NCBI GenBank assembly: GCA_020184695.1
Contig: JAANOX010000048.1
Span: forward strand, 24,598-88,597
Source: Histomonas meleagridis 2922-C6/04-290x
Taxonomy: Eukaryota > Protista > Parabasalia
Length of the DNA stretch: 64,000 bases
Direction of reading: 5' to 3'
In this document: piece by piece, positions 316-42,371 of the stretch
Layout: each line of letters starts with the position of its first letter
Position numbering within the stretch: the stretch's first letter is position 1
The notes under the pieces: model-generated
The model's input: only the letters and a program-made list of their open reading frames with translations
The model's database searches: none
What the model was told of the DNA's origin: nothing
Made by a program: the position numbers and the translations under genes

Positions 316-332
316 ATAAAAAATCAAAAAAA

Positions 333-3049: not shown

Positions 3050-3117
3050 ATATTATTTCAAAGGAATTTTCATTTAACAGAACATGTTAAAAAATTGACT
3101 TATTTCTGTTCTTTGGT

Positions 3118-4893: not shown

Positions 4894-5101
4894 GCCGATA
4901 CCACTTTTTGAGTGCCCTCAAAAAGTGGTATCGGCCCGTCCGTGCCTGTGAACGACTATTAATCCTGCTTGTAGTCGCAACTTTTTAATGATACTAAGCG
5001 AATATATTATATGTGTGCATCGAAATTTAAAAAAATTGAATGGTTTACAAAACATACCGATACCACTTTTTTTGAATGTTTTATTCAAAAAGTGGTATCG
5101 G
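4894..5101. repeat. Two related palindromes inside the transposon
   Basis: GCCGATACCACTTTTTGAG-TGCC-CTCAAAAAGTGGTATCGGC (4894-4935, perfect 19-bp arms) and CCGATACCACTTTTTTTGAAT-GTTTT-ATTCAAAAAGTGGTATCGG (5057-5101). Confidence 0.9.
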
Positions 5102-5278
5102 CATATATTGATAATAGAAGAAAAATACCAATATATTAATATATAGTTGCACGAGCTAGCTGGATGCGTCCAGTTCGATTAAGCACATGAAAATTAAGCA
5201 ATCGTTGTTCATATCAGTACTAGGCTTATATAATATAAGTAAACATAAAAATAATAATAAAAATCAAATGAGATGGAA

Positions 5279-6190: not shown

Positions 6191-6617
6191 TGAAAAAATA
6201 AACCATTGAAAAAGTGGAAACGATACAATGGGGCACCCCCTCATATAAACAACAAGAAAGTGACGGAATAAACTTTTGAATTCTCATATACAAACAATTC
6301 TATGAGTTCCATCAAAAAGTGAAGGGAATTAAAAATTCAGTACAAAGTTCACTTTTTGATAAATCTCATATGAAATTTTCTTTTACTCGTTGTAAAATCC
6401 ACTTTTTGAATCATCTCATACAAACAATTCTATGAGTTCATTCAAAAAGTGGAGAAAGTGAAGTCAGGCGCTTTTTCTCTTGCAACAAAACAGTGCTTTT
6501 AGAACGCAATACATCGCCACTTTTTAAAATTGAATGAAAAGTAAAATCATGGCACTTTTCTTTCATCGAAACAGTTCAAACATAAAAAAAATTTAAATTT
6601 CGAATATATATAAACAT

Positions 6618-8402
6618 TTATTCACTATTTGCAACAATTTTCTCGAACAAAAAGGTTTTTGCTAATGATTCAGAGCTATATTCACTTTTTTCAAGTTCGT
6701 TATCTGGTATTTTACTAATTTTTAATATTGCTTCTTTTATTTCATCAAATGATTTTTGATCCATTCCTTTTGGTTTTTTTCTATATTCTGCAATCCATGC
6801 TGTTTGTAATAAGCTATGAAGGTAATTCGGGTAATGATTAAAATCACCATCTGTTGAATATGTTATAATTTTATTAATTTCTTCGAACACTGTTCTTGGG
6901 TTTAGAAGTCGTTCAATTGATTTTTGTAAATCATTCACTTTATTTTTCTCTTTTGAAAGGAATTCAGGAAGTCTATATTCTGAATGAAAAACATTTAAAT
7001 TATTTCTAATTTCATCTAAAAACTTATCTTCGAAATCATCTGGAGGTTGTTGTAAATAATTTTGTATTTGTGAAACTATCATTCTTAATTTCTGTCCTTG
7101 AGCCTCAGCTACATTTGCAGCCAAAGCTTTCAGTATTACAGAAGACGGCAAATATTCAAACATATTTGAGATAAGTGACAACAATTTATTAAATGCATCG
7201 AATGATTTATCAGCACTTAAAAATATTTCTCCACTTAAAATGGAGAAGCAAACAGAAAAACAATTATAAATAACGTCAATGTTTGGCTCAAAATAAAATG
7301 GAAGTATTGATTCAATACATGAAACAGCTTTAACAAGAACAATTGAAGATGTATTAAATCGTATCATTATCGAAACTATGTTTTTAACGAAATCTGGAAT
7401 ATAAGAAAGTTGTGCTTGACTTTCTAATGTTTCTGTGTATTCTCTAAGAGATTTAATTGCTTCGTTTTCTTCGGGTATATCTGAAGTAAGTGTTAAAATA
7501 TCGATTTCATTTAGTTCGGGATCTTTTCCCATTATGCGTAATACTTCGACTGAAAGATTTGATATACTTTTGTTTCGATGATATACACCTGTTTGAAGTC
7601 TATTACATATACTGTTCTCTAATGTCGCAAGTTTGCATAATGAATTAACGACTAATTTATGTATTGATTTGGAGTAATCACATATATGTATAAGAACGGC
7701 AAATAATATATTGGATTCTTGTTTATGAATATGCCCAAGTTCAAGAAATTTTTCAAGAAATATGAGGGCATTGTAAATGGATTCTTCATTGGAAAGTGTT
7801 ATAATAAGTGAAACATATAAAAGAAAAAAATCTGAATTAGTTATAACTTTTTTTCGATCATTTTTTAGCATTAATGTAAGTGCTTGAAATGCTTTTTGAA
7901 ATGAAAAGTCATCATTCGAAATATCAGTTTCAATAATTAACTCAGGAACAAATGATGACTGTTTGTGTATAGGAATTGAGCTATTTGTGCTTATAACAGA
8001 ACTTTTGGATTTGGTACTACTAATTGATAATCGTGATATTTGATGTGTGGTGAAATATGATGGAAATAATAAATTGTAAACAGAAAATGAAAAAAGATCA
8101 CTCGCTATTTTCTTGGTATATGTGTAAAGAGCTTGAATTTGAGAATCATTTCCAAATATTTTGGGTCTTCCTTTTAACTCAATTGGAAGATATCTTGGAG
8201 AAGAAAAATTTTGCTTAAAGGTAGATGTGGCTAATTTAGTTTTAGCTGATATTTCTGGAAGATTGTTCACATTTTCTGATTTTGATTTCAATTTTGCTTC
8301 AATTGAAGTTTTTGCATTTCCATTTTTTCTTTGTGCTAATTTTGATACTGTTCCTCTCTGTGGAATCATAGAACGACTTTTATTCGTCTTTATTTTATCC
8401 AT
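6618..8402 (-). CDS. HEAT-repeat protein resembling the C-terminal half (TOG5/CTD) of XMAP215/ch-TOG
   Basis: 594-aa ORF with a basic N-terminus. DFSFQKAFQAL...VITNSDFFLLYVSL...NALIFLEKFL...HIHKQESNILF resembles the ch-TOG TOG5 segment (recalled alignment). Confidence 0.5.
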   Translation of the reverse strand: MDKIKTNKSRSMIPQRGTVSKLAQRKNGNAKTSIEAKLKSKSENVNNLPEISAKTKLATSTFKQNFSSPRYLPIELKGRPKIFGNDSQIQALYTYTKKIASDLFSFSVYNLLFPSYFTTHQISRLSISSTKSKSSVISTNSSIPIHKQSSFVPELIIETDISNDDFSFQKAFQALTLMLKNDRKKVITNSDFFLLYVSLIITLSNEESIYNALIFLEKFLELGHIHKQESNILFAVLIHICDYSKSIHKLVVNSLCKLATLENSICNRLQTGVYHRNKSISNLSVEVLRIMGKDPELNEIDILTLTSDIPEENEAIKSLREYTETLESQAQLSYIPDFVKNIVSIMIRFNTSSIVLVKAVSCIESILPFYFEPNIDVIYNCFSVCFSILSGEIFLSADKSFDAFNKLLSLISNMFEYLPSSVILKALAANVAEAQGQKLRMIVSQIQNYLQQPPDDFEDKFLDEIRNNLNVFHSEYRLPEFLSKEKNKVNDLQKSIERLLNPRTVFEEINKIITYSTDGDFNHYPNYLHSLLQTAWIAEYRKKPKGMDQKSFDEIKEAILKISKIPDNELEKSEYSSESLAKTFLFEKIVANSE

Positions 8403-10099
8403 AAAAATTCTTCCGTACGTTTAAAATGAGAAAGTGAAACGTTAGAGTGCCACACCCCGCGGCAAAAAGTGAAGAATCCGATTAAAAATGATCTAAAAAG
8501 TTAAATTGACGGCCAATAATAAAAAGGAAATATCTTTATCATTTCGAATAATAAACTAATATTGATGGCAAAAATGGTTATTTATTTTATTCGTTGATTT
8601 AAATATAATTTTTATATATTGAGAAATAAATTTTCAAATGAAAAAAGAAGATACGAACTTGTTCTATTATTGATGTGTTCGGAATTATTTTTTTTAGCTG
8701 AATAACAAAACGACATCCCTAATTATATAATTATCTTAAAAATATAACAAAAATATTTTAACATATCTTGCAATGTTTAAAAATCTTATACCAACATATT
8801 GCCAGAGTAAAAAAGGATTGAAGTCTCATATCTGGACTTCTAGTGAATAAATGATATTTTTAAAAACATTGTTTTATTATAGAAGATGTATGTACTAATA
8901 AACTATAATTCCTTGTCGGTGAAGATATAATTTTGCTTGAAATTTTGGGCACCATCACAAAAATTCTGGCTGCATTCTCGTAAAAATTTGTAATTAAATA
9001 TTTCTTCCTTATATAATTATGCATACCACATTGAAGAATGCACTTAAATATAATATTATAAGCCTGAGAACTTCTAAGGAGATTTGTAAAAAATTCGAAA
9101 AAGTAGATTTATCATGCCTATCCAGGAATTTAATTGTACAAACAACTTTAACTTAATTGAGCTAGTTACTTAGATCCTTGAGAAATATTCATCCTTAATT
9201 ATCAAATGCATCTCAATGTAATACAAGGTAACACGTCAAATAATATTAAAATTTTTTAAATATGATCTGTATTTAAGAAAATATGTCTCAAAGTGGATCC
9301 CATAAGAGTTAATAGGAATTAGGGGAAATTTCCTAAATGAAATGATATAACATTCGAATAGCTTTTTAGAAATCCTGAAGAAAGTTACTTAAGAATTTGA
9401 AGAATTTTATTAATATAATAACAAGTGATCGACCATTGTTGTATTTATGGTATGAAAGTTTTACATATTTACTTTATCAGCTGATAAAGTTCTAATACAT
9501 AACTCAATGTCAATTTTATCTAAAAATTTATGATGTAACATTCTTCTAAAAGTACATAAATATAATCAACAACATTTATTTGATAAATTACTACCTGAAA
9601 TTTAATTTATTACTGATAAAATATAGGGTAAACTGGATTTGGAAAATATGGATATGAATTCATATCGAAAATTGCAACCAATAAATTGACGATTTCAAAA
9701 GATAGAAAAGTTCCTCAATCACACTATTCAATTGACATCACAAGATCTTGTGATTTTTGATTATTTGGAAAAGTATAAAAAATATATAAAGATAAAAGAT
9801 GAACATGACACAAAAACATGCATTTTCGTCGTTAAAAAGCAAAAAGTCTTTGAGAGCCTTAAAATGACTTTAAATAATGAATGGAAAATTTAATCCATAT
9901 TATTAAGCACAGTAAAGAAACACTTTACTAAAGAAAAATCAGGATAAATTTCCTTCCATTGATTGATCGGAGGTTCCAATCATTGTTTTTCTGATAAACA
10001 AAAGATTCCGATCATATTTATTTCGATATCAACAAAATTCTTTTTCATTAATTTCAAATATTTTTTATTTATTTAATTTCAGAACACATCGAATTCATT

Positions 10100-11413
10100 T
10101 TACATATTTTGGACATCCACAGAATTTGCCCAAATCATCGCCACCATTATAGCTGCAGTTACTATTGTTTCCAATATTGCTATAATGCTTACTACTTTTG
10201 ATTGGAACTTAAACATTGCCAAGTAGCACACGGAAGGAATTATATACATTAGCAACATCATCGCAGTGTTTGCGATTATCGAAAATATCTTATAAACAAT
10301 GTTTGGCACGAACACGAAGAAGTCGCATAACAAAACCACTGCTAAACCTGTCACAACTCTTACAGAGTAAATTGACATTTTACCTAAAATTGGATTTTCG
10401 CTTAAATCCTCGCAAAACAATGAAGTAATTTGATCGACAAGTAAATAGTTATACATCACTGAGATATAAATATAATTAATTGCTAATGATATCTTACCGA
10501 TTAAAGTAATTGGATTGTTTTCGAAATAAAAGAAAAATGAATTACTTCCATCATTGTATGTATACAAAGTAAAATAACAGAAAAGACCAGTAAGAAATGT
10601 AAGTATAATGCTGATGATAGATGACATTCCGTACCCAATTAAGATCCGACGCTTTGTTGGGTTTCGGAAGTGGGAGACAAATGATGAAAATAATGGGTGC
10701 AAAAATAATATGGAATTAAACGTTTGGAAACAATCAATAATGCTCTTGAAGTCTGTGGTGAAATATTTGATTTGATTCCCGGAATCAAGGCCTGATGAAC
10801 TAAGTTTAAATTTGAAAAGTATAATGACACAAATAAAGCCTAAAATAAAACATAAGTTGCCAATTGCAGAAACTAGTGTCAAGCCTGAGAAATTTTGATT
10901 AAATAAACTTGGAATTGTAAAGATTATTGAAAATACATATACCCAAAAGAAATCATTATTGGCAAGTGATTCAGGAAGACCAATAGTACTGATGGACATT
11001 AATGATTTGATGATGTTTAAAAAGTTAATAATGGCATCTGCACTAACACTAACAAAATAAATAATTAGAAGAGCTGAAGGAACCCATGAAAACTTATTCC
11101 CGAAAATATTTCCCCAAATTTTTTGGTGTGTAATTATCGAAGAATTAGACCATGATTTAAGGAAAAGTCTGAAAGTGAAATTTGCAAAAAATAGAGCAAC
11201 AATACAGCAGATGATAGCAGTCGCAATTCCACTATTAAAGTTGCTTCCACATAAAAAAGGTGTAACACCAATGCTAGCTCGAATCATTATAAATATACAA
11301 ACAAACATTGGAACTTTGTCACTTCCTCCTGTATCTTCAAGGAATATGCTTTGATCCATGGATTGTCGACTGTTGAATTTATATGTTGAAAGAAGTGCGT
11401 CTCCACCTATCAT
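10100..11413 (-). CDS. Amino-acid transporter (AAAP/Aa_trans family)
   Basis: 437 aa with about 11 hydrophobic segments. N-terminal IMIRASIGVTPF resembles the family's first-helix 'GxGxLxxP' region. Confidence 0.7.
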   Translation of the reverse strand: MIGGDALLSTYKFNSRQSMDQSIFLEDTGGSDKVPMFVCIFIMIRASIGVTPFLCGSNFNSGIATAIICCIVALFFANFTFRLFLKSWSNSSIITHQKIWGNIFGNKFSWVPSALLIIYFVSVSADAIINFLNIIKSLMSISTIGLPESLANNDFFWVYVFSIIFTIPSLFNQNFSGLTLVSAIGNLCFILGFICVIILFKFKLSSSGLDSGNQIKYFTTDFKSIIDCFQTFNSILFLHPLFSSFVSHFRNPTKRRILIGYGMSSIISIILTFLTGLFCYFTLYTYNDGSNSFFFYFENNPITLIGKISLAINYIYISVMYNYLLVDQITSLFCEDLSENPILGKMSIYSVRVVTGLAVVLLCDFFVFVPNIVYKIFSIIANTAMMLLMYIIPSVCYLAMFKFQSKVVSIIAILETIVTAAIMVAMIWANSVDVQNM

Positions 11414-11533
11414 TGCGATTTTGAAGTTTTCAGAAGGTTAAAAAAACGTATTTCATTCAAATTATGAATGCTTTACATATATAAATATTTATCGTTGTAA
11501 AAATGACTACCTATTTGAATTTCCAAACTAAGA

Positions 11534-12082
11534 ATGGAATCAACAAACGAACCTCTCGAAGAAATCCATTTTAGTTTTGTTGTAGGTGGGAAATCAACAG
11601 CTAAGACAAATATTTGCAAAAGATTTTGTGAATTACAACCAACTCTTGTATCTCACAAAAAAATCTTTATTCATGTATGGGAGATAGCAAGTCAAGAAGA
11701 ATACATCGAGGTTGCTCCAATATACTTGAGAAATTGCTCATTTGCAATGATATGTTTTGATACGTCAGACGCTCAAGGATTTCAGAAGGCTGATTTATGG
11801 ATTAACTATATTAAAAGCGTAAAACCAAATTGTCAAATTGCCGTTGCAGCAAATAAATGTCATTGTAGCCAAAATGATGTAGAAATGAAACAAATAAAGT
11901 CATATGCTAGTTCCAAAGGTTTACCTTGTTATTTGGTCGATGGCCATAGTGATGATGACATTAAAAATCTATTTGATCAATGCGTCCATAATGTTTATGA
12001 AAATTATATTAAATTTCAACCACCTAAGCAAACAGTTGATCTTGCAAAAAGCAAAGAAACCAAAGGGAATTGCTTCCAATAA
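11534..12082 (+). CDS. Highly degenerate Rab/Ras-like small GTPase
   Basis: VVGGKSTAKT (G1-like), WEIASQEEY (G3-like), IYLRNCSFAMICFD, ANKCH (G4-like), C-terminal GNCFQ. Confidence 0.7.
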   Translation: MESTNEPLEEIHFSFVVGGKSTAKTNICKRFCELQPTLVSHKKIFIHVWEIASQEEYIEVAPIYLRNCSFAMICFDTSDAQGFQKADLWINYIKSVKPNCQIAVAANKCHCSQNDVEMKQIKSYASSKGLPCYLVDGHSDDDIKNLFDQCVHNVYENYIKFQPPKQTVDLAKSKETKGNCFQ

Positions 12083-12193
12083 GTGTATACACATTATTTA
12101 ATTAAATAAATTCATTAAACAAATTTAAAACTCCTTAAAATAATGTATACATTATGTAATATGATAGTTTATATATGTATCATTAAGATGTGA

Positions 12194-12227
<34 letters not shown>

Positions 12228-12499
12228 CATATACTTATTTCCAAAGATTAAATAATATATACTCGAAAGAAAATATTTCGTAACCAAGATTTCATGTGAA
12301 ATTGCTAATAAGGTTCAAATGTTTTTAAAGAAAACATAATAATCAAATTTAAATATCTAGACTTGGTATTAGATTTTGAAAAAAAGTAATAAAAAATAAA
12401 TATCTAAACAATGAATTTTATTATCAATATGCACATTTTTGGATCCCAAATAAAGATCCAGTTTGGAAATCCTCGAATTTTATTAACGGTCTCAAAAGG

Positions 12500-14032
12500 A
12501 TGGACTTACAGGAGAGGATATTAATTTCTCAAAATCAAAGCGATCAATTATCCAATGAAGGCGGAGAGCTGTTTGAAGTCATTGACCAACTTCATCAATT
12601 TGTAAACTTTCCTGAGGAATTGCTTCTTCCTTTAAATGCGTTTGCAAGTTCCCTAAATTTGTCATGGGCTCAAGTAACGAAACCTATTCTTGATCAAATA
12701 ATATCTACAGTTACAAACACCATTCAGAATAATAAAGAAATGGCACTGCAAATCCTCCAAGTCATCCATCCTTACATTCATCAAAGATTTCTATCAAAAC
12801 TCTTTCAAGAAATTTGTGAAGTATCTCCTTCCATACCTGATTATTTTCTTTTTGAATTATTTGAACTACCTCCATCAATTTTCGATAACATTTTTACTTC
12901 TGCTAAATCCAGACTTTCTATTTATTCACAATGTAAGCCCATATTTATCCGATCCGTTCTTACTACTATCAATGAATTTTGTTGTAATCCATTAAATCTT
13001 GATTTATTTCTCAACAATATCCGTACTCGTGTTACACAAAAAAAGAATGAAGATGGGGTCAAAGTTCGAAATTTTTCTACATCCAAACTTAATCCTCAAC
13101 TTTCTGAATTTCATCATTCCATTTGTTCCGAACCCATCGAAAAGTTACTTTCCATTGCAGGTGAACAGCTTCATTTCTATCAAGAGATTTGTAGTATTCT
13201 TCGTGACATATGGGAGAAAACCGGTAATTCCTTAACTGCATCACTTCGACTTGAATTAGCATTTAAATCACAGCAAACTCAATTTAAAGATCCATTGTTA
13301 CCATTTGCCAAAAGTATATTTAATCTTTTTGATAGCGGCAAGCCCAATTATCTTGAACAAAACTTTCGAGCGTTACCCGATTTTCGTTTTATTACATATG
13401 ATCCACTTTTACGCTTTTATCTCTATTGTGAATTTATACGACGGACATTTGAGCGCATTAAGAAATGTCGATATGAGCCATATGAAAATCGTACAGAACA
13501 AAACAAATTTCTTTTTTTGTTAACGCCAATGATGCAAGATGAAGAACGCGAAGATCTTTCGAATAATATCGAAGCAATTTTCATTGCATTTGATTTAGGT
13601 GAACCTCGTTTTAGTGAATGTTTAGATGCGCTACAAAAGGATACAAAGGTTAACGACGAATCTTCGCATCTGATAATGTTTGTTGGTCAGTTGTACCTCG
13701 AATTACATGACTCACCAGCTTTGATCGAAATCGCATCAAATGAAAACGTAGCGCCTGATGTGATTGTTGGCTATTTGATGATGAGATGGTTGGCACTTAT
13801 GGGGCTAACAGATGCTTCTGCTCACTCTATGCTGAGATTAATCATTTGTTGGGCGCGAAAGGACAGATTTATACTTTCTTATTTGTTGGCATTGTTGGAA
13901 TGTCGATTAGATAAAAGAATGAAACAAGAACAAGAAATAATCGGAAATATAATTAATGAAATTGGAGAATGTTGTTTTGAAGGTATAGAAAAAGCAATGT
14001 TTGAACATATTTGCTCTGTGTTAAATCAATAA
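12500..14032 (+). CDS. NELFB: NELF-B/COBRA1-like protein
   Basis: IEKLLSIAGEQLHFYQEICSILRDIWEKTGNSLTASLRLELAF...DP matches the NELF-B motif VQRLTRMVGKNVKLYDMVLQFLRTLFLRTRNVHYCTLRAELL...DP. The N-terminal helical blocks are also colinear (recalled alignment). Confidence 0.6.
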   Translation: MDLQERILISQNQSDQLSNEGGELFEVIDQLHQFVNFPEELLLPLNAFASSLNLSWAQVTKPILDQIISTVTNTIQNNKEMALQILQVIHPYIHQRFLSKLFQEICEVSPSIPDYFLFELFELPPSIFDNIFTSAKSRLSIYSQCKPIFIRSVLTTINEFCCNPLNLDLFLNNIRTRVTQKKNEDGVKVRNFSTSKLNPQLSEFHHSICSEPIEKLLSIAGEQLHFYQEICSILRDIWEKTGNSLTASLRLELAFKSQQTQFKDPLLPFAKSIFNLFDSGKPNYLEQNFRALPDFRFITYDPLLRFYLYCEFIRRTFERIKKCRYEPYENRTEQNKFLFLLTPMMQDEEREDLSNNIEAIFIAFDLGEPRFSECLDALQKDTKVNDESSHLIMFVGQLYLELHDSPALIEIASNENVAPDVIVGYLMMRWLALMGLTDASAHSMLRLIICWARKDRFILSYLLALLECRLDKRMKQEQEIIGNIINEIGECCFEGIEKAMFEHICSVLNQ

Positions 14033-14172
14033 ATATTTTTTATAGATGAATAACGGTTATAATCGGCTTCGATAGAATTGTATAATTTACAAATTTTACA
14101 AAAGTGTTTAATGTATTCTATTGTTTACAAAAAATGTATATATTCAAAATAATCTATGTGTTAATTGAATTC

Positions 14173-15229
14173 ATGAAAGAATTTTTTGATTGTTAAAACT
14201 TTACCTTCTTCACCAGATCCTTTCGCTAATGATGGACCTGCTTACTTCAACCCTAAGCCTCGTGTAATAACAGATCCTTTTTTAGACCCTTTAATTGATA
14301 ATTCAACATTTAATTCTTCATTTTTTTCAGAAACATTTAATGATCCATTTTCTTCTCTTATGCGCAGACTCTTATTGTTTCCTAGTGAAAATTCACAAAT
14401 ATCTTCTCATTTCCAACAACTTTTTTTAATGAATTCTCCCACAAGTAGTTTTTTTCCTGTATTAGTTGAAATTCTCAAAAACCCCAATATCGATCAAACC
14501 AGCAAATTGTTATCAATTAAATCAATGACAAATTTTTCAATCAACAATGAAGAATTCAGTCGATTTGTCTTAGACAATTGTGCCTATTTTTTTAAACTTT
14601 ATACAAACCGTGACTTCCTCCTTGATGTTCTTGATCTTTTCCAAGCTGTTTGTGCTTATGCCACTGAACAAGATTCAAAAATAATAATTCACAAACTTTA
14701 TCAAGACAATCTCATTCATTATGAAGAAAAGGGAACCATTAGACCCGATGACGTCCGTTCCCGACTCCATTGCATATATTCTATTCTTGCCAAATACGGA
14801 TCACAATTTCCAGATGAGCTTGTCAAATACATTCTTTCCCATTATAACTATCAAACTTTGGGTAAGGATCACCTTAAATGGTCCATTGCATATCCTTCTA
14901 TGACATGTATCGAACAGCTTTTGCAACAACCGGAAACGAATGCGTACAAAATATTAATGGATTCGACGTCGAAACTTAATGCGAAAATTGTTTCCGCTGT
15001 TATATGTTCCGTTAAGAGTAAGAAAGATAACATAAAAATACTCGCGATGAAGATATTGTTTCAATCGGTAAATCATTCATTGCAAATACAGACAATAATG
15101 AGATGGGACTCAATATACAACAACCTGTTGTCGGCTTTAATCGCTTTGAAAAGTTTTGGCAAGAGTCAGGTCAAAGAAATGGCCGAACTGTTGTTGCAAA
15201 TATTTGAATGTCCGACTATATCGAAATAA
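14173..15229 (+). CDS. ARM/HEAT-like hypothetical protein with an apparent 1-nt frameshift near the start
   Basis: 347-codon ORF without an upstream in-frame ATG. ATG 14173 joins it if the T6 run at 14182-14187 is read as T5 (MKEFLIVKTLP...). Confidence 0.6.
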
Positions 15230-15970
15230 ATATGTGATTTAAATAAATATAAATTATATTAATATAATTATGGCTAAATTTTATGTAATGAAAGAGTTTT
15301 ACTTACATTGTTTTGTCAAAGAATTTGTTGGTTGTGTTTTACCTTATCCTTATATCTAATTTTTCCATCAAATCAAAATATTCTGGATTAGTATGATGTC
15401 CAACTTTCTGGTTTAAGAATTTTTATTTTAAATGCACCTTTATGTTTATTTTTAGATCTAACATCAATGAAAGTTTGCGCAATATGTTTAATATTATAAA
15501 GTTATATCATTTTTCATGTATTTTTTATACATGCATTGACATAAGCATGATATTTAGAGAATATTTTATAAATCAAAAAAAATTAATTTCTAACATTATG
15601 AATTCAACTCACATTCTATTTCATTTATTTTCTTCATATATTGAACAAAGTACCGAATTTTCAAATAACTACGACTTCTAAATAAGACATCTGATTGTTT
15701 CTTAAAATTCATAAGTTTTTTAACATTGGTCTTGAGAAATTATAATTGTAATTTATCAAACGTTTCCAAATATAAAAAATTGACATTGTAAAATAAAATA
15801 GAAAATAAATATAAAAAAATTTATGAAGATGACTAATTGTCTACGAAGCTATCAGGTTCTGCTTGAATAAATTGAAAGATGCCACTTTTGAATTGCCGAT
15901 ATTTGCGTAAACCAATGAAATTACCCAAACAACAATAACCGCTTTTGCACTGACAATTTCACACAACGCA

Positions 15971-16678
15971 ATGAGTTCGTTCTTCAACAAGATGCGCCAT
16001 TTCCCAGAGTTTCACGAAACTATAACTGCAATCGAATCTCAAAAGAAAGCAGAGCAAACAATGATCGATGGATATACAAAAGCATTTGGTGATGATTTCA
16101 AAAAATACTCTGGACAACAAAAACCCGAGTTCCAAAATGGTTTAAACGGAATCATCGAATGTGGAATTCAAGAAACAACCATTATTAGAGATAGTTTTGT
16201 AGCAGTTTCTAATTTTGCTAATGACATGCAACCACTCCTTCAACAAGAAATTGAAATCAACAAGTGGAGAGAACTTTGCAAGCAAGCACAAGAATTAGCC
16301 AAGAAGAGTAGAGAAGATGCTAAAAAGAAAGAAGCTGCTTATAATCGTGCACAAACTTCAGGCAAGCCATCAGACATTAGTAAAGCTGAAGTTGCATACT
16401 CTTCTGCTAAGAGAAAAGCTGAAGAGGATACAAACAGTGCTAATGATCAACAAAAGTCATTAGAAGAAAAGGAAGGACCATATAGGGAGCAATTCCTTCA
16501 ATCCTTTGTTACTCCAATGACAGCAGTTATTAACCTTAGAATTCAAGAAGCAGAAAAGATTTTACAACTCACAAATCAATTTGATGAAGCTATTTCTAAA
16601 GTTCAAGACTTCCATGATGAAGGTGTTGATCATTATAAGGAAAGGTTCCAACAACTGAGTGCGGTTGTTGTCGAGTAA
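15971..16678 (+). CDS. All-helical coiled-coil protein, BAR/Vps5-like
   Basis: 235 aa, charged amphipathic helices with a BAR-like three-segment layout; no specific motif. Confidence 0.55.
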   Translation: MSSFFNKMRHFPEFHETITAIESQKKAEQTMIDGYTKAFGDDFKKYSGQQKPEFQNGLNGIIECGIQETTIIRDSFVAVSNFANDMQPLLQQEIEINKWRELCKQAQELAKKSREDAKKKEAAYNRAQTSGKPSDISKAEVAYSSAKRKAEEDTNSANDQQKSLEEKEGPYREQFLQSFVTPMTAVINLRIQEAEKILQLTNQFDEAISKVQDFHDEGVDHYKERFQQLSAVVVE

Positions 16679-16774
16679 ACAAAGTAAACCAACAACAACA
16701 AAAATTTGTTTTTTTTGTAGTTATTCAAAATAACGGTTTTTACACAACGAAAATTCGAATCTTTTTTAGGTAAA

Positions 16775-19700
16775 ATGAGCAAACAAAATCCTCGGGTATG
16801 CGTTTACTGTAGCTCTTTGTGGTATACTCATATTGCTGTCACCGTTACCCGAGAATCACCTACATATATTTTTACTGTTCAATATCCATCAGGAACTGTT
16901 TTCTTTTCAAACACTCCAAAAGTTGACGTTTTCGAAAGTCAAGTAGCTGCTGGGCGTTATATAAAAAGCAAATTTCAATCAAATTTAATTGCTGATGGAA
17001 CAGCTTTAATCGGACTTTCAATTTCTCCTGAAGGTGAAATAATTTATGCAATTATTCAACGCGCAAAAGAAAAGGCCATTCTTCCTAATGGATCATCAAT
17101 ATATAAAACAAAAGAAATTAACATTTTTTCGATTGATTTAACAACACAAAAAACTAAAAAAATCGAGAACGCGCTTGGAAACAATTTCTTTTATTGTCCA
17201 ACTTTTGATATTACACATCCATATCCATCTGAACAAACTGTTTCTGATTATGATCCAGAATTTTGTTGGAATCAAAAATGGCGAATTGCTTTTGAAAAAG
17301 TAGATGCCAGTTTTGCATGCACTGTTCTTCTTCAAGGTTATATTGGGAGTAAGAGTTCAAGTTCTATTTATATTGCTCGACGATCAATATATAATCCATA
17401 TACTAGATACACCTCTCGAGGTATTTCTGAAGGGTGTCCAGCAAATGAACTTGAATGTGAGCTTATATTTCTTGAGGATAAGCGCTTTTGGTCGAACTGT
17501 TGGCGAAGAGGTTCGGCGCCCGTTAAGTGGCGATCTGCAGTTTCAGGAATCAGTGTAATCCATAATGTATTAGATAATGATCCTGAAGAAACACATTGCT
17601 ATTTTATCAAAATTCTCAAGCGATTCCAAATTCAAAAGATCCATGTCTTATCATTATTAGAAGGAAATGGATTTGAAAAAGAGTTATCCAATTCATATCA
17701 AAAGTCAATCCAAAGCTTAGACTTTGTTGATTTCCATGAGTTTAACATCAACACATTAGGCAATGGCAATAGTTTACAAAAAGCAATTTCATTTCAAAAT
17801 TTTTTATCATCAACATTCTTAACATCAGAACCAATTTTTACTGAAGGAGAAGTTGATACTGTAACCAAACGCCAAAACACGATAATGCGTTTTAATTGTG
17901 TAGATTCAACAGATCGTACAAACATTGCAACATTTTTCTATGCAAGAGCGTTAGCCGAACGCAAAGGGTTTTGTAAAATAGATCGAGACTTACTTATTCC
18001 ACTTTTTTTAAAATCGGGAAATGTAATTTCATATTTTTATATGTTAAGTGACGCCACCAAAACGCAAATCATTCGAATCTTTACTCCAAATACCGATGAC
18101 GTTCGATTTAAAAAATGTTTTCCACACTCAATAATATCTACTTCAAAGTCCGATGCGGCGTTAACGATCACCCGCCGATTGAAAGTCAATTCATTTTATG
18201 AGGTCGATAACAATATTTCTGAATGGCTAACCGCCGATTATAAACCCCCGTTAACGTACACCATTGATTGGACCCATTTGTTAATAATTACCAATTCTAA
18301 AATGATATTAAATTATAAACAACCGATGCCAGATTCAATATTACATACAAACACGTCGTGTATTCAATGCGATTTAAATCAATTTTCATCGGAGATAATC
18401 TTAAAGTTACCGAAGCCGATGCGGATATCACATTTGACATTAATCGTAATGCCGAATTCACCAACTTCGTTTACGTTAAGTTGTGGTATGGATGAAAATA
18501 CGCGTCACATATGGCTAAAGGACATCTCATTGCCAATCGTACAAAACCCAATACCATTACGATATTCATTAATCCAATCTTCACGTCGTTGGAACATTAG
18601 CGCTCCATTTGATATCCATGGGACTGAACCGTCGCGTTTTGTATGGATTACATTTAAATGTGACAACAGAAACAATTCGAAAGTTACAATTTCGAATGTT
18701 TTCATTGATGGGATTATAACGAATGAATATCAAGTTCAAAAGTTCGATGCAAATACTTATAACCAAAGTAGTATTAATGAATATGAAAAGAAAATCCAAA
18801 ATTTCTTCGAAGCAAATAATAGGAATTTAAGTGATTATATGGAATTAGAAATATTTCGTATTAAGAATCGGATTTCTTTGGATTTACGCAATTTAATTAC
18901 TATAAGACTTGGTTATAACCCTTTTTATACATCCATTTTATCAAAGTTAAAAGCGGATTTGTCAAAATGTTATTTCTGTTCAAAGATTACAAGTTATAAT
19001 GAAGCAGTTCCAACTTTTTGGGTTCCTAATTTTTGGAATTTACTCGATTATGACAGAAGAAGAGTTGAAACATGTCAAAAGCCCTTTAAATTATGTAATA
19101 ATTGTTATAACCAAATAAAACAATTCGAAAAAGATATTAAAGAATTGGAATATAAGTTAACTACAATCAATAAGAAAGTAAATAAGTCGGAAATTATCAT
19201 GAAGAATTTGGTTAAGGGTTCAACACTTTTATCTTTACCTGATCAAACATGTTTTTTAGAGTATCCTTTAAATTGTTCGAATAATAATAACATTAATAAT
19301 CTTTTAATAGATAACGATGAAGTTTGGTCAATCGATTTACAAGTTAATAATTTAAAGGATTTGATGTTTACAATTTGTTTACCTACGTATTCAATTGTTT
19401 CATCAATTTCAATTGAGTTCATAGGTGATTTACCGAAAACTATTTCGATATTATCTCTTAGCAAACAAACTTTCGAAATAATTGTACAGAACAACGTCTG
19501 CTTTTTGGTGTTTAAAACACCTTTTATAACTGAATCAATAACATTTGTCTTGACACCAAACGTAAATCAAAAGTTTATGACGATGAAATTGATCAAATTT
19601 TTCGGCGAATTCATAAATCGGCCATTACCGCCTCCGATTTTAGAAAGCGTTGACCCAACGAATCGAAAATTAGTATCAATTCATGGTGAAACTGATCCTA

Positions 19701-36762: not shown

Positions 36763-37605
36763 TTACTGACGTGGTGGGAGACCAGCAGCTGCAAGACGTT
36801 CGTTGAGGAGTCTCTTGCGTTCTTCTGGTGAGAGCCTCTTTGCGTGTGGCTTCTTGAGTTGGTAATGTGTTGTTGCCTTTGGAGCTGGATCTGGGTTAGC
36901 GCGGATGGCCTTGTGTGCTTCGGTGTAAATCTTTTCGAGATTTTCTGGTGCGATGCCTTCTTTGATGTAGCGTGAGAATTGTCTCTTGTAGGCATCTTCG
37001 TTTTCGGACTTAAGTTTCTTCATGTAATCAGCAATGTGGCCACCGAGGATGAAGTACCTTTGCTTCTTTTCCTTTTCGCCACCAGCAATACGTGTGTCGC
37101 TATGTGGAACAAATAATCCGCCATCAACAGCTCCTTTCATAACACCGAAAACACGTGCACCTGTGGTTGTACGACGAAGACCAACATCAAGGAGAACTTT
37201 GAATGGACGGCGAGCATCTTCATCTTCTTCTTCTGGATTGACGGCTGTCTTGAAGATTTCGTCAAGGCCAAGCTTCTTGAGGAGTCTACGAGCAACAAGT
37301 AAACCAGTGCAGTAAGCTGCTGGATAGTTAGCAAGACCAAGCTTGATTCCATACTTAACAAGTTCGGTGGATTGGGCTTGGGCCATTGTAACATCGTGGT
37401 CAAGTTCAGCATAAACAATTTGAGCGATGACCTTTGTATTTGTGATACGAGCAACAAGACGATATTTCTTAGCACCATACTTTGTCTTATCTTGTTGAAT
37501 TAATGATGAACGTTGAACATAATCAGTCTTGCATTCACGCCTCCTGCGGAATGGGGTTTGGTAACGTGAAAAGTAAGATGAGTTCTTGATGATCTTTGCA
37601 GACAT
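36763..37605 (-). CDS. RPL5: 60S ribosomal protein L5 (uL18)
   Basis: YFSRYQTPFRRRRECKTDY, NYPAAYCTGLLVARR, LDVGL..TTGARVFG.MKGAVDGGL, YKRQFSRYIK. Confidence 0.97.
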   Translation of the reverse strand: MSAKIIKNSSYFSRYQTPFRRRRECKTDYVQRSSLIQQDKTKYGAKKYRLVARITNTKVIAQIVYAELDHDVTMAQAQSTELVKYGIKLGLANYPAAYCTGLLVARRLLKKLGLDEIFKTAVNPEEEDEDARRPFKVLLDVGLRRTTTGARVFGVMKGAVDGGLFVPHSDTRIAGGEKEKKQRYFILGGHIADYMKKLKSENEDAYKRQFSRYIKEGIAPENLEKIYTEAHKAIRANPDPAPKATTHYQLKKPHAKRLSPEERKRLLNERLAAAGLPPRQ

Positions 37606-37612
37606 TGTGCAA

Positions 37613-37666
37613 AAAGGAGGAACACATCAAACCGCTGTCAAAACACGTGTGGCCATTTGTCACTTT
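37613..37666 (-). promoter_or_regulatory. Parabasalid M5 + M3 (+ M2) core promoter of RPL5
   Basis: On the minus strand: CCTTT (37617-37613), AGCGGTTT (37636-37629) and AAAGTGAC (37666-37659), matching Trichomonas core-promoter motifs. Confidence 0.75.
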
Positions 37667-37751
37667 TCTGCCTGTGAAATCATTTTAAGTGTGTTTGACC
37701 GCATTAGCATGCAAAAAGTCAATTTCGTCGTCAAACAGCTTCACCAAAAGC

Positions 37752-40478
37752 ATGGATCAAATTGCTTTTTATCTGAGCAAATTCGTCGAGACTAATTCTG
37801 TTATTATTCAAAATTACTTGCTTTTGAGTCGTACTTTAGAAAGTGAGTATTCAATTATTTTTTTATTTGCAGGAATTATTTCATTTTTATGTTCTTTTGT
37901 TATTTCACAAATTCACTCAATCTCTAGGCTTCCAAACATTGCATTTTCTATTGGATATCTCATATGGGGAATCACATTTTTGATATATTCTAGACAAGAC
38001 ATTCCAGATTTTGTAATTGCCTTATTATTTATAACGTCAACAATCTCACGCACAGGGTTCAGATTAATTGAACTGGATTATAAAGATGTGAATCAAAAGC
38101 TGTTATCAATTATTCCATTTCTTAGTGTATTAACTTTACCCATTTGTTTAAATGACAAACTTTCCTTTGTTTATGGAGTCCTTTCAATATTTTCTGCAGT
38201 AATTGCTTTCTCTATGAAATCACCAAAAAGTAAGCCAACAAAATACAATTTAAAGGAAATGATTTCAGTTTTTAAGCCTTCAATGCTTGATGAAAATATA
38301 ACGTTTGTTCTGTTATTTTCCTTTTTGTTATTAATAATTATTAATGAACAAATGTCAATTTTATCATTTTTAGAAACATTCAACACTATTGCCAAGCCTG
38401 TTTTTGTTGCTGTTTTCTTGGGTCTTATTGGATTGTCATTCATTATTGATTTTACAAATTTCAAAAGCACTGGTACAAAACTTGCCATCTCTTTAATTGC
38501 TGGTGTTATATGCCTTAAGCTCTCAGTTAGTCTCTTACATTATGTTGGAGTTGCTCTTCTCACACTTGGAATCATTTCACTTGAGAATCAAATTCGAGCA
38601 ATGCTTTCTGACTACGTTCCACAATCTGTTACATCGAGTTTTATCACTACATTTGAGTCTCTTTCCATTCTTTTCCCTCTTTTCGGTTCCCACTTTTTGA
38701 TAGTTTCCGCTTTTTCAATATTAATTTTATCTATCGTTCTTCCTCAATATCTTCGTTCTAAAACACAAATACTTATGACTCCTTATGCCGAAAAAATGTC
38801 TCGTGATTTACCATGGAATGAATATCCTCGTCCTCAATTTAAACGTGATTCATTTTTCAATCTTAATGGAAAATGGAATTATAAAATTACTTCTTCTAAT
38901 GTCATACCAGAAAATATTGACGGTGAAATTCTTGTTCCGTTCCCACTTGAATCCATCTTAAGTGGTGTTGGTAAATCACTTTCTAAAACACAATTTTTGT
39001 ATTACAAGAGAACGTTTATTTTACCTAATGATTTTGTTAAAGATAAATTATTACTTCATTTTGGAGCTGTTGATTGTATTGCCACTGTTTTCTTAAATGG
39101 CAAAGAACTTATTACACATGTTGGAGGTTATATACCCTTTCAAATCGATATCACATCTTCTGTAAATTATAATTCTGAGAACACGCTAATTGTTCGAGTT
39201 CAAGATCAACTCGATCACAAATATCCATACGGAAAGCAAAGGAAGGACCGAGGCGGCATGTGGTATACACCTGTAAGCGGCATTTGGCAAACAGTTTGGG
39301 TTGAAAGTGTATCAAATGATTACATTGAAAGTCTCAAAATTTTACCCGACATTGACCGCAGCCAAGTCACAATTCAAGTCAATGGCACAACATCCGAAAA
39401 GACAATCACCATTTATCAAGATGATAAATATCAAAAATCGATTCTTTCCACTACATTTACCGATAATAGTACCACTATTAACATTCCTAATGCACATCTT
39501 TGGTCACCTGAAGATCCACATCTTTATTACTTCACAATCTCTACATCCACAGATACAATCAAATCATATTTTGCAATGCGCAAATTTAGTATTGACAAAC
39601 AACAAAAGCGTCTTTGCCTCAACAATAAGCCTTACTTCTTCAATGGCCTTCTTGACCAAGGCTACTTCAGCGATGGCATTTTCTTACCAGCCACAAGCGA
39701 AGGGTACAAAGACGACATAATACGTATGAAAGAACTCGGTTTTAATACATTACGGAAGCACATCAAAATCGAGCCATTAATTTTTTATTATTTATGTGAT
39801 ATCTATGGCATGGTCATATTCCAAGATTTTGTTAATAACACTGACTATTCGTTCATTATCGACACAGCATTACCTACTATAGGATTAAAGAAACTTAACG
39901 ACGAGAAATTCCGAGTGCCGAAAGTGAACAAAGAAATTTTCATCCAAACTATGAATGAAACTGTTTCGTTGTTATATAATTCACCATGCATTGGTTATTG
40001 GACTATCTTTAATGAAGGCTGGGGACAATTCGAAAGTTCCCGTGTTTATCATATATTACAAAAACTCGATTCAACACGAATCATTGATAGTCATTCAGGT
40101 TGGTTTAATGGTGGCGAAAGTGACGTAGAAAGTTTGCACATATATTTCAAGCAACTTTATGATGTTGAATCTGATTTACCATTAGTCCTAAGTGAATTCG
40201 GTGGATATTCTTATAAAATTGATGAAAACTCTTTTAACACTGAACATAATTACGGATATCGTTTATATAATGATCAAGCTGATTTCCAAAAAGGTTTCGT
40301 TAATTTGTATGAAAACGAAGTAATGCCATTGATTAAAAAGGGTTTGTGTGCTTGTATATATACACAAGTAAGTGATGTTGAAGATGAAACAAATGGAATT
40401 TTAACATATGATAGAAAGGTGTGTAAGCTAAAGAAAGATGAAATTGTTGAAATGATGAAAAAGCTTAAGATTGAGTAA
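37752..40478 (+). CDS. Fusion of a 12-TM MFS-like membrane domain (aa 1-341) and a glycoside hydrolase family 2 enzyme
   Basis: Single stop-free frame from ATG 37752. Twelve hydrophobic segments (6+6) are followed from 38775 by MTPYAE...EYPRPQFKRDSFFNLNGKW, LHFGAVD, GIWQTVW, GLLDQGY..DG, RKHIK, WTIFNEGWGQ and LSEFGG. Confidence 0.85.
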   Translation: MDQIAFYLSKFVETNSVIIQNYLLLSRTLESEYSIIFLFAGIISFLCSFVISQIHSISRLPNIAFSIGYLIWGITFLIYSRQDIPDFVIALLFITSTISRTGFRLIELDYKDVNQKLLSIIPFLSVLTLPICLNDKLSFVYGVLSIFSAVIAFSMKSPKSKPTKYNLKEMISVFKPSMLDENITFVLLFSFLLLIIINEQMSILSFLETFNTIAKPVFVAVFLGLIGLSFIIDFTNFKSTGTKLAISLIAGVICLKLSVSLLHYVGVALLTLGIISLENQIRAMLSDYVPQSVTSSFITTFESLSILFPLFGSHFLIVSAFSILILSIVLPQYLRSKTQILMTPYAEKMSRDLPWNEYPRPQFKRDSFFNLNGKWNYKITSSNVIPENIDGEILVPFPLESILSGVGKSLSKTQFLYYKRTFILPNDFVKDKLLLHFGAVDCIATVFLNGKELITHVGGYIPFQIDITSSVNYNSENTLIVRVQDQLDHKYPYGKQRKDRGGMWYTPVSGIWQTVWVESVSNDYIESLKILPDIDRSQVTIQVNGTTSEKTITIYQDDKYQKSILSTTFTDNSTTINIPNAHLWSPEDPHLYYFTISTSTDTIKSYFAMRKFSIDKQQKRLCLNNKPYFFNGLLDQGYFSDGIFLPATSEGYKDDIIRMKELGFNTLRKHIKIEPLIFYYLCDIYGMVIFQDFVNNTDYSFIIDTALPTIGLKKLNDEKFRVPKVNKEIFIQTMNETVSLLYNSPCIGYWTIFNEGWGQFESSRVYHILQKLDSTRIIDSHSGWFNGGESDVESLHIYFKQLYDVESDLPLVLSEFGGYSYKIDENSFNTEHNYGYRLYNDQADFQKGFVNLYENEVMPLIKKGLCACIYTQVSDVEDETNGILTYDRKVCKLKKDEIVEMMKKLKIE

Positions 40479-41081
40479 ATATTTGTTTTAGTTTTTATGA
40501 TTTTCTTCAAAGAGAAAAAATTTTTTCTATTTCATTATTAAAAGTAAATGACATCAAGTTTTGATACAAAAATGTAATGCCGATAATTTTTCGTGCGTGC
40601 TTATTCACGACTTATTTGACACTATTCAAATCTTTGAAGTAAATTTAACAAAATTGTTCAAATTTCAGCGTTTATTTATTTTTGATAGCAACTTGCATAA
40701 ACTTTAAGAAAAATTCAATTCCACTTACGGTTTTTAAACGGCAAGTTTATGCTGCGTTTTAATATTTTCTATGAGTTTCACAATGGGATTTCTTTTTGCT
40801 TTGCTTAAATATTTACGCCTATAAGAAATTGTTAATAAAATTTATTGGGTCATTTTTCATGTACATTAAAAATGAAACCCAAACCTATGTCTACAATGTT
40901 CATAATAATTTTCATAAGTGTGAAAGAGACCACAGTTTAATTTTAAATTAACCGCCAACATACCTCACAGAATCGACGTGGTTTTAAATATTGTAACTTT
41001 TTGAGATAATATTCAACGGTTTCAGCCATATTTCAATTGCAATTCAAAGCTGGACAACCACAAAGCAATATTACCCTCAAT

Positions 41082-42371
41082 ATGTCTTACTTAAGCCCTG
41101 CCAACATGAAGCAACTACTAGATCAACTCGCCACCGAATATGAGTTCTTAGTCAACAATCGTACAAAACTAGAAAATGATTGCACAAAGTTAAAGGATTA
41201 TATCGATTCTCAAATAACACAGATTCAATCACTAAATAATGACTTTGAAAAACTACGCCAAGAATTCCTTAAAAGGGGCGGTACACAACTAATGAAGCAA
41301 GTACAAGACCCTGCACCAACAGAAGCTGAACAACATGCAGAAGAAGAACAAACAACTCAAGATTGGGAACTAATAACACTCGCGGCACCTGAGAACATCT
41401 TGAAGCCCTACATAATTTCCTTAATTGCAGAAATCTTAGATATTTCGGTTATTTGTTCCACATCTTTTAGTCCTAACGGAACTTTTATTGCAATTGGATC
41501 TGATAAGACCATACGTGTATACAACATCGAAAAGGATACTTTTCAGTTCCAAGAAACAATAGAAACAAATGAAACAGATCCATCAATAAGTCATATTCGA
41601 TCAATTTCATGGATTGGTAATGACAAAATCATTGTATGTCATGGTGGTGATAGTCATATCCGTGTATATGATATATATGAAAAAAAATTATGTAATGATT
41701 TCACTACAGGCGAAGGCGGTGTATTTCAGGTACTTGTTTCTAACAACAATAAATACATTTCTGCCATCACTGGTGATGGTTCTCTTGTAATTTTTTCGAT
41801 GGATGATTTTACAGAGATTGCCAGAATGAAGCGTACAGCAGTTGAAAGTGATGAAGAGGTCATAGCAGTATCAATGGCCATATCACTTGACGACAAGATC
41901 ATAGCTGTTGGTTATAGTGATTATCACATTGTCTTATGGGATGTTGAAACACATCAACAACTTTTAGACAACAAATGTCACAGTGATGGCATTCAAGCCA
42001 TTAAGTTCATACCCAATTCTAATCGGTTAGCTACCGCCTCTCTTGATTTCACAATTAAGATTTGGGAAATGAATAAGACAGATGATGGTAAAATCGATTT
42101 CCAAATGTGGAAGTCGATTGACGGACATGAAAACTTTGTGTTAACCCTTGCCGTTGATGCAAAAGGCGAATGGTTACTTAGCGGTTCTAAGGATATGTCG
42201 GCGCGTTTAATCGACTTAAAGACCGGAGAAATGATATATAACATTAAAGGTCATGCGAACTCGATCATATCTGTAGACTTTAATAAGGCCGGAAATTTGT
42301 TTTGTACTGGATCTGGTGATAAATCTGTTAAAATCTGGTCGTTTACACCAGAAGAAACAGGTGAAATTTAA
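41082..42371 (+). CDS. TUP1: Tup1-like transcriptional corepressor (N-terminal coiled coil + WD40)
   Basis: LLDQLATEYEFL Tup_N-like coil; VICSTSFSPNG.FIAIGSDKTIRVY, GHENFVLTLA, LSGSKD, GHANSIISV, FCTGSGDKSVKIWSF. First ATG is 41082. Confidence 0.7.
   Translation: MSYLSPANMKQLLDQLATEYEFLVNNRTKLENDCTKLKDYIDSQITQIQSLNNDFEKLRQEFLKRGGTQLMKQVQDPAPTEAEQHAEEEQTTQDWELITLAAPENILKPYIISLIAEILDISVICSTSFSPNGTFIAIGSDKTIRVYNIEKDTFQFQETIETNETDPSISHIRSISWIGNDKIIVCHGGDSHIRVYDIYEKKLCNDFTTGEGGVFQVLVSNNNKYISAITGDGSLVIFSMDDFTEIARMKRTAVESDEEVIAVSMAISLDDKIIAVGYSDYHIVLWDVETHQQLLDNKCHSDGIQAIKFIPNSNRLATASLDFTIKIWEMNKTDDGKIDFQMWKSIDGHENFVLTLAVDAKGEWLLSGSKDMSARLIDLKTGEMIYNIKGHANSIISVDFNKAGNLFCTGSGDKSVKIWSFTPEETGEI

Follow-up and report, generated by a model that had tools for sequence, protein, structure and literature searches.

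In Escherichia coli, LacY, a permease of the major facilitator superfamily (MFS), and LacZ, a cytoplasmic glycoside hydrolase of family 2 (GH2), are separate proteins. Here we describe a gene of Histomonas meleagridis 2922-C6/04-290x in which an apparently MFS-derived membrane domain and a GH2 hydrolase share a single reading frame. The gene lies at positions 37752 to 40478 (+ strand) of a 64,000-nucleotide stretch of contig JAANOX010000048.1 (contig positions 24,598 to 88,597), referred to here as the window. A preliminary description of this DNA had proposed that a gut-bacterial GH2 was fused to a transporter within the protist, giving a one-protein LacY–LacZ analogue. The comparisons presented below provide good support for a different history, in which a whole permease–hydrolase module was transferred from bacteria and then decayed asymmetrically, rather than a LacY–LacZ chimera made by the protist.

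Among GH2 enzymes, the characterised members of group III (GH2_18/19) are α-L-arabinofuranosidases and β-D-galactofuranosidases, and the structures 7SF2, 9J6N/9J6M and 7XYR belong to or cluster with this group (PMC12243196). In ORF1110 of Streptomyces sp. JHA19, the residues binding a galactofuranose (Galf) mimic are K212, Y228, H401, N463, E464, E530, Y551, and E594 (PMC11627007). The GH2 and other carbohydrate-active enzymes (CAZymes) of trichomonads are of bacterial type and laterally acquired, with multiple independent GH2 acquisitions proposed, and about a third of trichomonad CAZymes are predicted to carry transmembrane (TM) segments (bioRxiv 10.64898/2026.10.12.758501; Mol Biol Evol msaf276); the parabasalids concerned live in the gut or on mucosae. 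Neither an MFS-derived domain nor the transfer of a transporter–enzyme module is mentioned in the former work (bioRxiv 10.64898/2026.10.12.758501), and our literature search found no paper describing an MFS–GH2 fusion or the clostridial fusion family considered here.

The window protein resembles fused proteins of gut Clostridia (for example P0003, P0024, and P0099) in domain order, linker length, GH2 clade, and 12-helix MFS fold, and its GH2 half is 50–54% identical to theirs. In contrast, its N-terminal half (N-half) is ~90 residues shorter, ~20% identical and not recognised by Pfam MFS_1; it lacks the clostridial signature peptides [MLF]DC[VI]MTFF and NDA[AC]FNAW as well as motif A, and the gene resides in a eukaryotic genome. 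ORF1110, 7SF2, and 7XYR share with the window enzyme the three-domain jelly-roll/Ig/TIM organisation, the NE acid/base motif, and the nucleophile Glu. Unlike ORF1110 and group III, however, the window protein has no signal peptide and no CBM42/AbfB domain, carrying an N-terminal 12-TM domain instead. The concept shared with LacY and LacZ, an MFS permease working with a cytoplasmic GH2, probably held for the bacterial ancestors. The window N-half differs from LacY in being degenerate, in not belonging to the oligosaccharide:H+ symporters, and in giving no LacY/galactoside-permease match, while the enzyme lacks the five-domain organisation of LacZ and the two halves are fused, where LacY and LacZ are separate.

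A single transcribed frame and its GH2 half

The gene occupies one uninterrupted open reading frame (ORF; window 37689–40478, +) with zero internal stops, in which the first ATG, at 37752, opens a product of 908 amino acids (aa) that ends at the TAA codon at 40476–40478. The N-half (aa 1–334; 37752–38753), a probable diverged derivative of a clostridial MFS protein, comprises 12 predicted helices in a 6+6 arrangement around a central cytoplasmic loop with 6 Lys/Arg (aa 155–182; 38214–38297). It is followed by a linker equal in length to that of the bacterial fusions (aa 335–357, YLRSKTQILMTPYAEKMSRDLPWNE; 38754–38822) and by the GH2 half (38823–40475). The ORF, the AlphaFold2 (AF2) models, and the loop Lys/Arg thus bear out the single frame, the 12 helices and the charged central loop joined to GH2 that the preliminary description had reported, and the junction reads LRSKTQILMTPYAE, as stated there.

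Contigs from four sequencing runs labelled RNA(?) confirmed the extent of this frame. One contig per run, from the same organism, matched with no mismatch or gap over its ORF portion; the contigs spanned 37565–40492 (X1), 37640–40537 (X2), 37698–40405 (X3), and 37576–40293 (X4). All four begin upstream of ATG 37752, covering a 5′ region at 37565–37751 with contig 5′ ends between 37565 and 37698. The stop was reached by the X1 and X2 contigs only, which end 14 and 59 nt past the stop codon, while X3 and X4 finish inside the ORF (40405 and 40293). The stop and the short 3′ end occupy 40476–40537, where a TAAA overlaps the stop. Read depth was 13–18 on the gene, thousands on the gene for ribosomal protein L5, and 0 at 40626–41078 in three of the four runs, and this pattern of a low gene, a high L5 and an empty 3′ gap indicates RNA instead of contaminating DNA. 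Since the contigs run gap-free from upstream of 37752, the start codon, the junction, and the GH2 region lie on one transcript. The junction had been singled out earlier as a place where a stop or indel might separate the halves; none was present in the RNA contigs. The deposited gene model P0001 (708 aa; 38352–40478) begins in the middle of the membrane domain at Met201 (38352–38354), and, judged by the transcript support, it is too short, with 200 N-terminal residues missing. An out-of-frame upstream ATG at 37709–37711, 43 nt before the start codon, is also covered by RNA contigs, those of X1, X2, and X4 but not of X3. It would open a short upstream ORF overlapping the start if the 5′ untranslated region is truly so long.

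Pfam searches recovered all three domains of a GH2 enzyme above their curated cut-offs in residues 368–800, namely Glyco_hydro_2_N (PF02837; 42 bits, cut-off 28), Glyco_hydro_2 (PF00703; 34.7 bits, cut-off 23), and Glyco_hydro_2_C (PF02836; 34.8 bits, cut-off 21). The predicted local distance difference test score (pLDDT) of the AF2 model was >90 across aa 345–908. N754-E755, containing the acid/base residue E755, and the nucleophile E815 of the SEFGG motif were invariant across 37 aligned relatives, in agreement with the complete enzyme and catalytic glutamates described previously, and they align with N463/E464 and E530 of ORF1110. A search of the PDB placed 7SF2 (BACCELL_01794) nearest at 2e-109, followed by 9J6N/9J6M at 1e-91 and the BtGUS-like 7XYR at 5e-70, whereas classical β-glucuronidases and LacZ-type structures followed only at 1e-24 or weaker. 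LacZ-type NCBIfam models scored 46–83 bits against the window, with cut-offs of 999–2000. The earlier suggestion of a LacZ or β-glucuronidase type was therefore not sustained, the nearest structures being those of the furanosidase group III.

To the same effect, all eight residues of the Galf-mimic site in ORF1110 find identical residues in the window protein, K495, Y505, H670, N754, E755, E815, Y836, and E879, as counted by hand on the HMMER alignment. All eight lie within 38823–40475 (+) and show little or no variation among the 37 aligned sequences. Besides the catalytic positions they comprise K495, Y505, H670, Y836, and E879, the counterparts of K212, Y228, H401, Y551, and E594, which in ORF1110 touch the furanose ring and the O5/O6 diol. 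Judging from its residues, the GH2 half is intact and most likely an exo-acting β-D-galactofuranosidase or α-L-arabinofuranosidase of group III, and the enzyme should be better annotated as a probable furanosidase than as a β-galactosidase or glucuronidase. Possible gut substrates include plant arabinans, arabinoxylans, and the galactofuranose of bacterial or fungal glycans.

The membrane half and its probable clostridial relatives

Our first homology search with the window protein retrieved ~100 stand-alone GH2 proteins of 555–630 aa (50–55% identity), 15 bacterial clusters of 985–1016 aa that combine PF07690/PF13347 with GH2 and cover 82–96% of the query, and one 911-aa protein, P0002, with 53% identity and 100% coverage, whose eukaryotic origin is considered below. 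The fused proteins P0099 and P0003 are located on ordinary bacterial contigs, with bacterial contexts seen in L001 and L003.

A scan with the MFS half, covering one genome per prokaryotic species, matched at least 595 genomes, and the best 80 of these matching loci (L006–L085) were used to count gene arrangements. Nearly all 80 come from Clostridia-type metagenome-assembled genomes (MAGs) from the guts of ruminants and humans, including Oscillospiraceae, Lachnospiraceae, Acutalibacteraceae, Faecousia, and Christensenellaceae. MFS and GH2 share one ORF in 23 of them; in 37 the two are separate ORFs in different frames, GH2 coming immediately behind MFS or overlapping it, 16 have MFS without GH2 in the locus, and four end at a contig edge. 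Overlap lengths range from a few bases to some tens, with a change of frame, for example at 4786–4799 in L006 and 4762–4790 in L008. The MFS/GH2 boundary looks like a recurrent hot-spot of fusion and fission; in some MAGs the overlap may instead reflect a sequencing frameshift. One MAG labelled Spirochaetaceae (L079) carries the same MFS/GH2 pair, 63% identical to the clostridial query, either by transfer between bacteria or through a binning error.

The flanking genes are heterogeneous, which indicates that the MFS/GH2 pair is a self-contained module that has repeatedly fused and split. In the same way, the heterogeneous neighbours provide no conserved polysaccharide-utilisation context, and so no substrate was inferred from context. 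Of ~25 neighbours of the module that were inspected, three are genes of nucleoside metabolism, encoding Ppnp (L003, 2376–2684), a pyrimidine nucleoside phosphorylase (L008, 2185–3483), and an adenosine deaminase (L025, 6467–7435). Nucleosides are furanosides; the proximity may be coincidence or could be a lead to the substrate. The clostridial fusion family, visible in databases via its Pfam domains, appears to be otherwise undescribed. The preliminary description had asked whether the architecture was already a common family, and it proves to be so in bacteria and not in protists. In the bacterial ancestors it is almost certain that the module takes up a glycoside for cytoplasmic cleavage.

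Two further bacterial proteins illustrate other membrane associations of this GH2 clade. P0044 (L090, 950–2839), a bacterial GH2 that falls beside the protist clade, has no MFS domain; its N terminus is instead extended by 60 residues that contain two hydrophobic helices. This extension may be what is left of the final two MFS helices, serving as an anchor, and it indicates that simple membrane anchoring of this enzyme does occur. Next to the stand-alone GH2 P0009 (L089), a 545-aa protein (1356–2993) with ~13 hydrophobic segments ends 8 nt upstream. It gave no Pfam match and no similarity to the module MFS, and represents a further membrane partner of the clade, of unrelated type.

In the window protein, Kyte–Doolittle hydropathy showed ~10 strong peaks in aa 30–330, and 12 helices were present in both AF2 runs, of the full-length protein and of the N-half. 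They occupy residues 2–27, 30–55, 60–79, 86–109, 115–132, and 135–154 in the first bundle and 183–210, 215–231, 237–257, 261–288, 296–310, and 314–334 in the second. The N-half reached a pLDDT of only 40–60 in the full-length model with a 37-row alignment, and of 83, with a predicted TM-score (pTM) of 0.79, when modelled by itself with a 67-row alignment. All Foldseek matches to the N-half model were MFS structures (TM-score 0.6–0.73, residues 2–335). Loop Lys/Arg residues number 14 on the predicted inside and 5 on the outside; this distribution fits the canonical N-in/C-in topology of MFS proteins and would place the GH2 half on the cytosolic face. Both termini of the membrane domain are thus predicted to be cytosolic, in line with the MFS-like half and the orientation proposed originally.

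Sequence comparison of the N-half gave a fainter picture. Residues 1–341 produced no match of any kind in Pfam or NCBIfam, and no MFS match at E up to 1; the N-half of P0002 likewise gave no MFS match, whereas the N-halves of the bacterial partners match Pfam MFS_1 at 1e-24 to 1e-37. A word-indexed search with the N-half alone returned only the window's own product, low-complexity TM words having swamped the candidates. BLASTP against bacterial MFS proteins gave a collinear match over residues 67–297 at 3e-4, and hhalign against 65 bacterial MFS halves gave a score of 38.1 over 265 collinear columns (E 2.7e-4), compared with 20.7 for a reversed query and ≤19.5 for 30 column-shuffled queries. 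The N-half and the bacterial MFS domains have several landmarks in common, Y-L-I-W-G in TM3, F-K/R-P-S before TM7, and D-x-x-P after TM10, and the final helix and the YPRP motif are ~24 aa apart in the window and the bacterial fusions alike. FKPSMLDENIT in the central loop matches the bacterial F-R-P-S and is the N-half motif that the two eukaryotes have best conserved. With a protein language model, the N-half was nearest to Bacillota MFS clusters (scores 0.95–0.96), and its ten best family matches were all MFS. The N-half is most likely an MFS-fold anchor or a much-altered permease, with coupled transport a possibility.

Origin and genomic setting of the protist gene

To place the enzyme among its relatives, a tree of 120 GH2 domains was obtained by a quick LG+G4 search, with support from the Shimodaira–Hasegawa-like approximate likelihood ratio test (SH-aLRT). 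The window protein and P0002 are sisters (99*). Together with all 15 fused bacterial proteins, the pair is nested in a starred clade of 50 rows, and the remaining 70 stand-alone GH2 domains branch elsewhere in the tree. The nearest rows to the protist pair are P0003, which is fused, P0007, P0009, and P0044. The bacterial origin of the GH2 that had been suggested at first is upheld by these bacterial nearest relatives and by the nesting of the protist sequences among fused bacterial forms. Taken with the tree position, the collinear N-half and the same order and linker spacing point to a bacterial module as the source of both halves. On the sequence comparisons, then, the fusion does not appear to be a protist product of a host transporter and a foreign enzyme, and the whole module appears to have come from bacteria; the fusion event that the preliminary description had located within the protist is at odds with the same MFS+GH2 order and junction spacing being widespread in gut Clostridia. 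We estimate at about 2:1 that the donor gene was already fused, as opposed to an overlapping pair that fused at or after transfer; in a eukaryote, only fusion lets the second cistron be translated.

P0002 is encoded on a 26.7-kb human-gut metagenome contig (L002) of 21–28% GC. Positions 1–18736 of this contig contain unbroken ORFs of great length (2876 and 2366 aa) and spacers of 38–48 nt, and the gene neighbours of P0002 are the 2876-aa ORF, a sphingomyelin-synthase-like PAP2_C gene, and an ATR-type kinase. The PAP2_C gene marks the contig as eukaryotic, and a search with it brought up no named relative. The P0002 gene was found in four samples, including three further metagenome/SRA assemblies, with ≤2 codons different, and for this reason the ratio of nonsynonymous to synonymous substitution rates in the N-half was uninformative within its cluster. 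Just upstream of the P0002 ATG is TCATA, a TCAYW-like initiator element, which weakly favours a parabasalid host. L002 and the window have no synteny in common. A single acquisition that predates the separation of the two lineages accounts for the pair most simply; transfer from one eukaryote to another is possible.

In the window, the ORF is neighboured by the gene for ribosomal protein L5/uL18 (36763–37605, −) and a WD40-repeat gene (41037–42371), and its GC content of 0.29–0.35 is similar to that of the flanks. It is an ordinary expressed AT-rich nuclear gene situated between ribosomal-protein and WD40 genes. The L5/uL18 gene is itself covered by many short RNA contigs with 2–5 differences (positions 37009–37045), some of which continue at 37617 into sequence unlike the window. 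This suggests that L5/uL18 exists as several near-identical paralogous copies with different flanks.

Fate of the two halves after the proposed transfer

Comparison of the two halves disclosed opposite patterns of conservation. Over the 15 bacterial fusions we defined 163 invariant MFS columns and 165 invariant GH2 columns. The window protein keeps 32/163 of the former, a further 32 being gaps, and P0002 also 32/163, while the GH2 columns kept are 160/165 in the window and 159/165 in P0002. Between bacterial fusions compared in pairs, the median identity is 67% for MFS and 56% for GH2, and pairs with GH2 halves 60–75% identical have MFS halves 65–80% identical. The window and P0002, by contrast, are 23–29% identical in the N-half and 68% in GH2, and the window has a median identity to the bacterial fusions of ~20% in the N-half and 54% in GH2. 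The MFS half is therefore the better kept of the two in bacteria, and the reverse is true in the protists.

Specifically, motif A (G-x-x-x-D-R/K-x-G-R/K-R/K, in the TM2–TM3 loop) is lost, with D69, G72, K73, R74, and K75 of the bacterial proteins corresponding to S56, R59, L60, P61, and N62 in the window, and the bacterial intramembrane residues E27, D125, N136/D137, R153/E157, and Q363/R366 are replaced or deleted. What persists in the N-half is a 341-codon open frame, twelve hydrophobic helices, and the central-loop motif FKxSMLDENITxVLLF, together with polar intramembrane residues common to the two eukaryotes, N21, E199, K256, and E302. A stop-free stretch of 341 codons in DNA of ~30% GC is very unlikely to be chance under neutrality. 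These comparisons suggest that the constraints on the bacterial transporter were lost after transfer and that those on the enzyme were unchanged. The LacY–LacZ analogy offered in the preliminary description is apt for the bacterial ancestors; an importer is doubtful in the protist, with 20% of the invariant positions remaining and motif A lost.

We favour an explanation in which the ancestor would have been a self-contained module of MFS permease and GH2 in gut Clostridia, as a fused ORF or overlapping genes, both halves of which a gut protist lineage would have acquired laterally before its split from the L002 organism. The GH2 half would then have stayed almost unchanged and the N-half decayed, still keeping a compact 12-helix MFS fold that may hold the enzyme on the cytosolic face of a membrane. 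The present-day protein would be a membrane-tethered furanosidase of the cytosolic face, its N-half mainly a polytopic anchor and perhaps a residual or altered permease, to which we assign a probability of roughly 0.55. The loss of ~80% of the bacterial-invariant transporter residues, including motif A, argues for a tether over a faithful LacY-like importer. Several observations count against this explanation or parts of it. The twelve helices and polar residues shared by two eukaryotes go beyond the demands on a simple tether and would suit a transporter that has been re-specified, and a cytosol-facing furanosidase requires a cytosolic substrate, which argues for some permease activity, in this protein or elsewhere. 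The homology of the N-half to bacterial MFS is weak (hhalign probability 26–42%), the match of its model to the MFS fold is partly circular in that the alignment behind the model is mostly bacterial MFS, and a hidden Markov model (HMM) of the two protist N-halves searched against 1.84 billion representatives recovered only its own cluster, with no bacterial or eukaryotic relatives. The tree comes from a quick LG+G4 search with support near the protist clade of 84–94, unstarred; the data fit both the transfer of a fused gene and that of an overlapping pair followed by fusion; and the RNA support consists of assembled contigs with flat depth, compatible with an extra internal transcription start.

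As the main alternative, the protein could be a working permease that imports and hydrolyses in one polypeptide, with cleavage of a glycoside from the gut lumen or phagolysosome where the pore opens to the cytosol. The canonical 12-helix fold and N-in/C-in topology are retained, the whole domain is kept open in two eukaryotic lineages with polar intrahelical residues in common, the bacterial ancestors were almost certainly coupled modules given the pattern of fusion and adjacency, and a cytosolic enzyme has to be supplied with substrate. However, only 32 of 163 bacterial-invariant transporter positions survive, motif A (D-x-x-G-K-R-K) and conserved intramembrane residues are replaced or deleted, no Pfam MFS match is obtained, and evolution is far more rapid in the N-half than in GH2, opposite to bacteria. 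We consider such a permease possible but doubtful. The same tentative standing applies to the form it would take here, a re-specified permease of the plasma membrane or phagolysosomes that hands galactofuranosides or arabinofuranosides directly to the fused hydrolase, the entire module having been taken up as a single translatable unit and both halves still being used. If, on the other hand, the highly diverged N-half were a non-functional remnant, the active product could be shorter, starting at Met201 (708 aa), where the public annotation begins, or as a soluble GH2 at Met342 (ATG 38775), exactly where stand-alone bacterial GH2 proteins begin. This is improbable: in all four runs the RNA contigs extend 5′ of ATG 37752, the 341-codon N-half is free of stops in two lineages only ~25% identical there, Met342 is replaced by Glu in P0002, and a start at Met201 leaves an odd six-helix half-MFS.

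Two other origins receive still less weight. The protist may have fused a host transporter gene with an independently acquired bacterial GH2, since the N-half alone has no significant database match and its sequence alone is no proof of bacterial origin. Nevertheless, the domain order and linker length equal those of the bacterial fusions, the collinear similarity to that bacterial MFS exceeds the controls, the nearest language-model clusters are Bacillota MFS, and the HMM search brought out no eukaryotic N-half relative, leaving such a fusion with little credibility. Bacterial contamination or an assembly chimera, which would account for nearest GH2 relatives that are all bacterial, is the least credible explanation and can practically be set aside: eukaryotic genes flank the ORF on the same contig, ORF and flanks are alike in composition, the organism's RNA runs show its expression, with the 3′-reaching contigs ending 14 and 59 nt past the stop, and an orthologue occurs on an independent eukaryotic contig in four samples.

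A bacterial GH2 in a gut parabasalid is in itself unsurprising, as lateral acquisition of glycosidases is already known. What is new is that the acquired unit is a permease and a hydrolase in one frame, kept in two gut eukaryotes, and that it belongs to a widespread and apparently undescribed clostridial family, which serves as a natural ‘Rosetta stone’ connecting GH2 furanosidases with an MFS subfamily that is yet to be characterised. Also new are the opposite fates of the halves after transfer, the enzyme being frozen and the transporter stripped of conserved residues with its fold kept, which makes this locus a natural experiment on what becomes of a polytopic membrane domain from bacteria once it is housed in a eukaryote. 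Should the N-half prove to be a re-specified permease, this would be the first case described among eukaryotes of uptake and cleavage carried out by a single polypeptide, and an example of fusion letting an operon-like pair survive transfer into a eukaryote.

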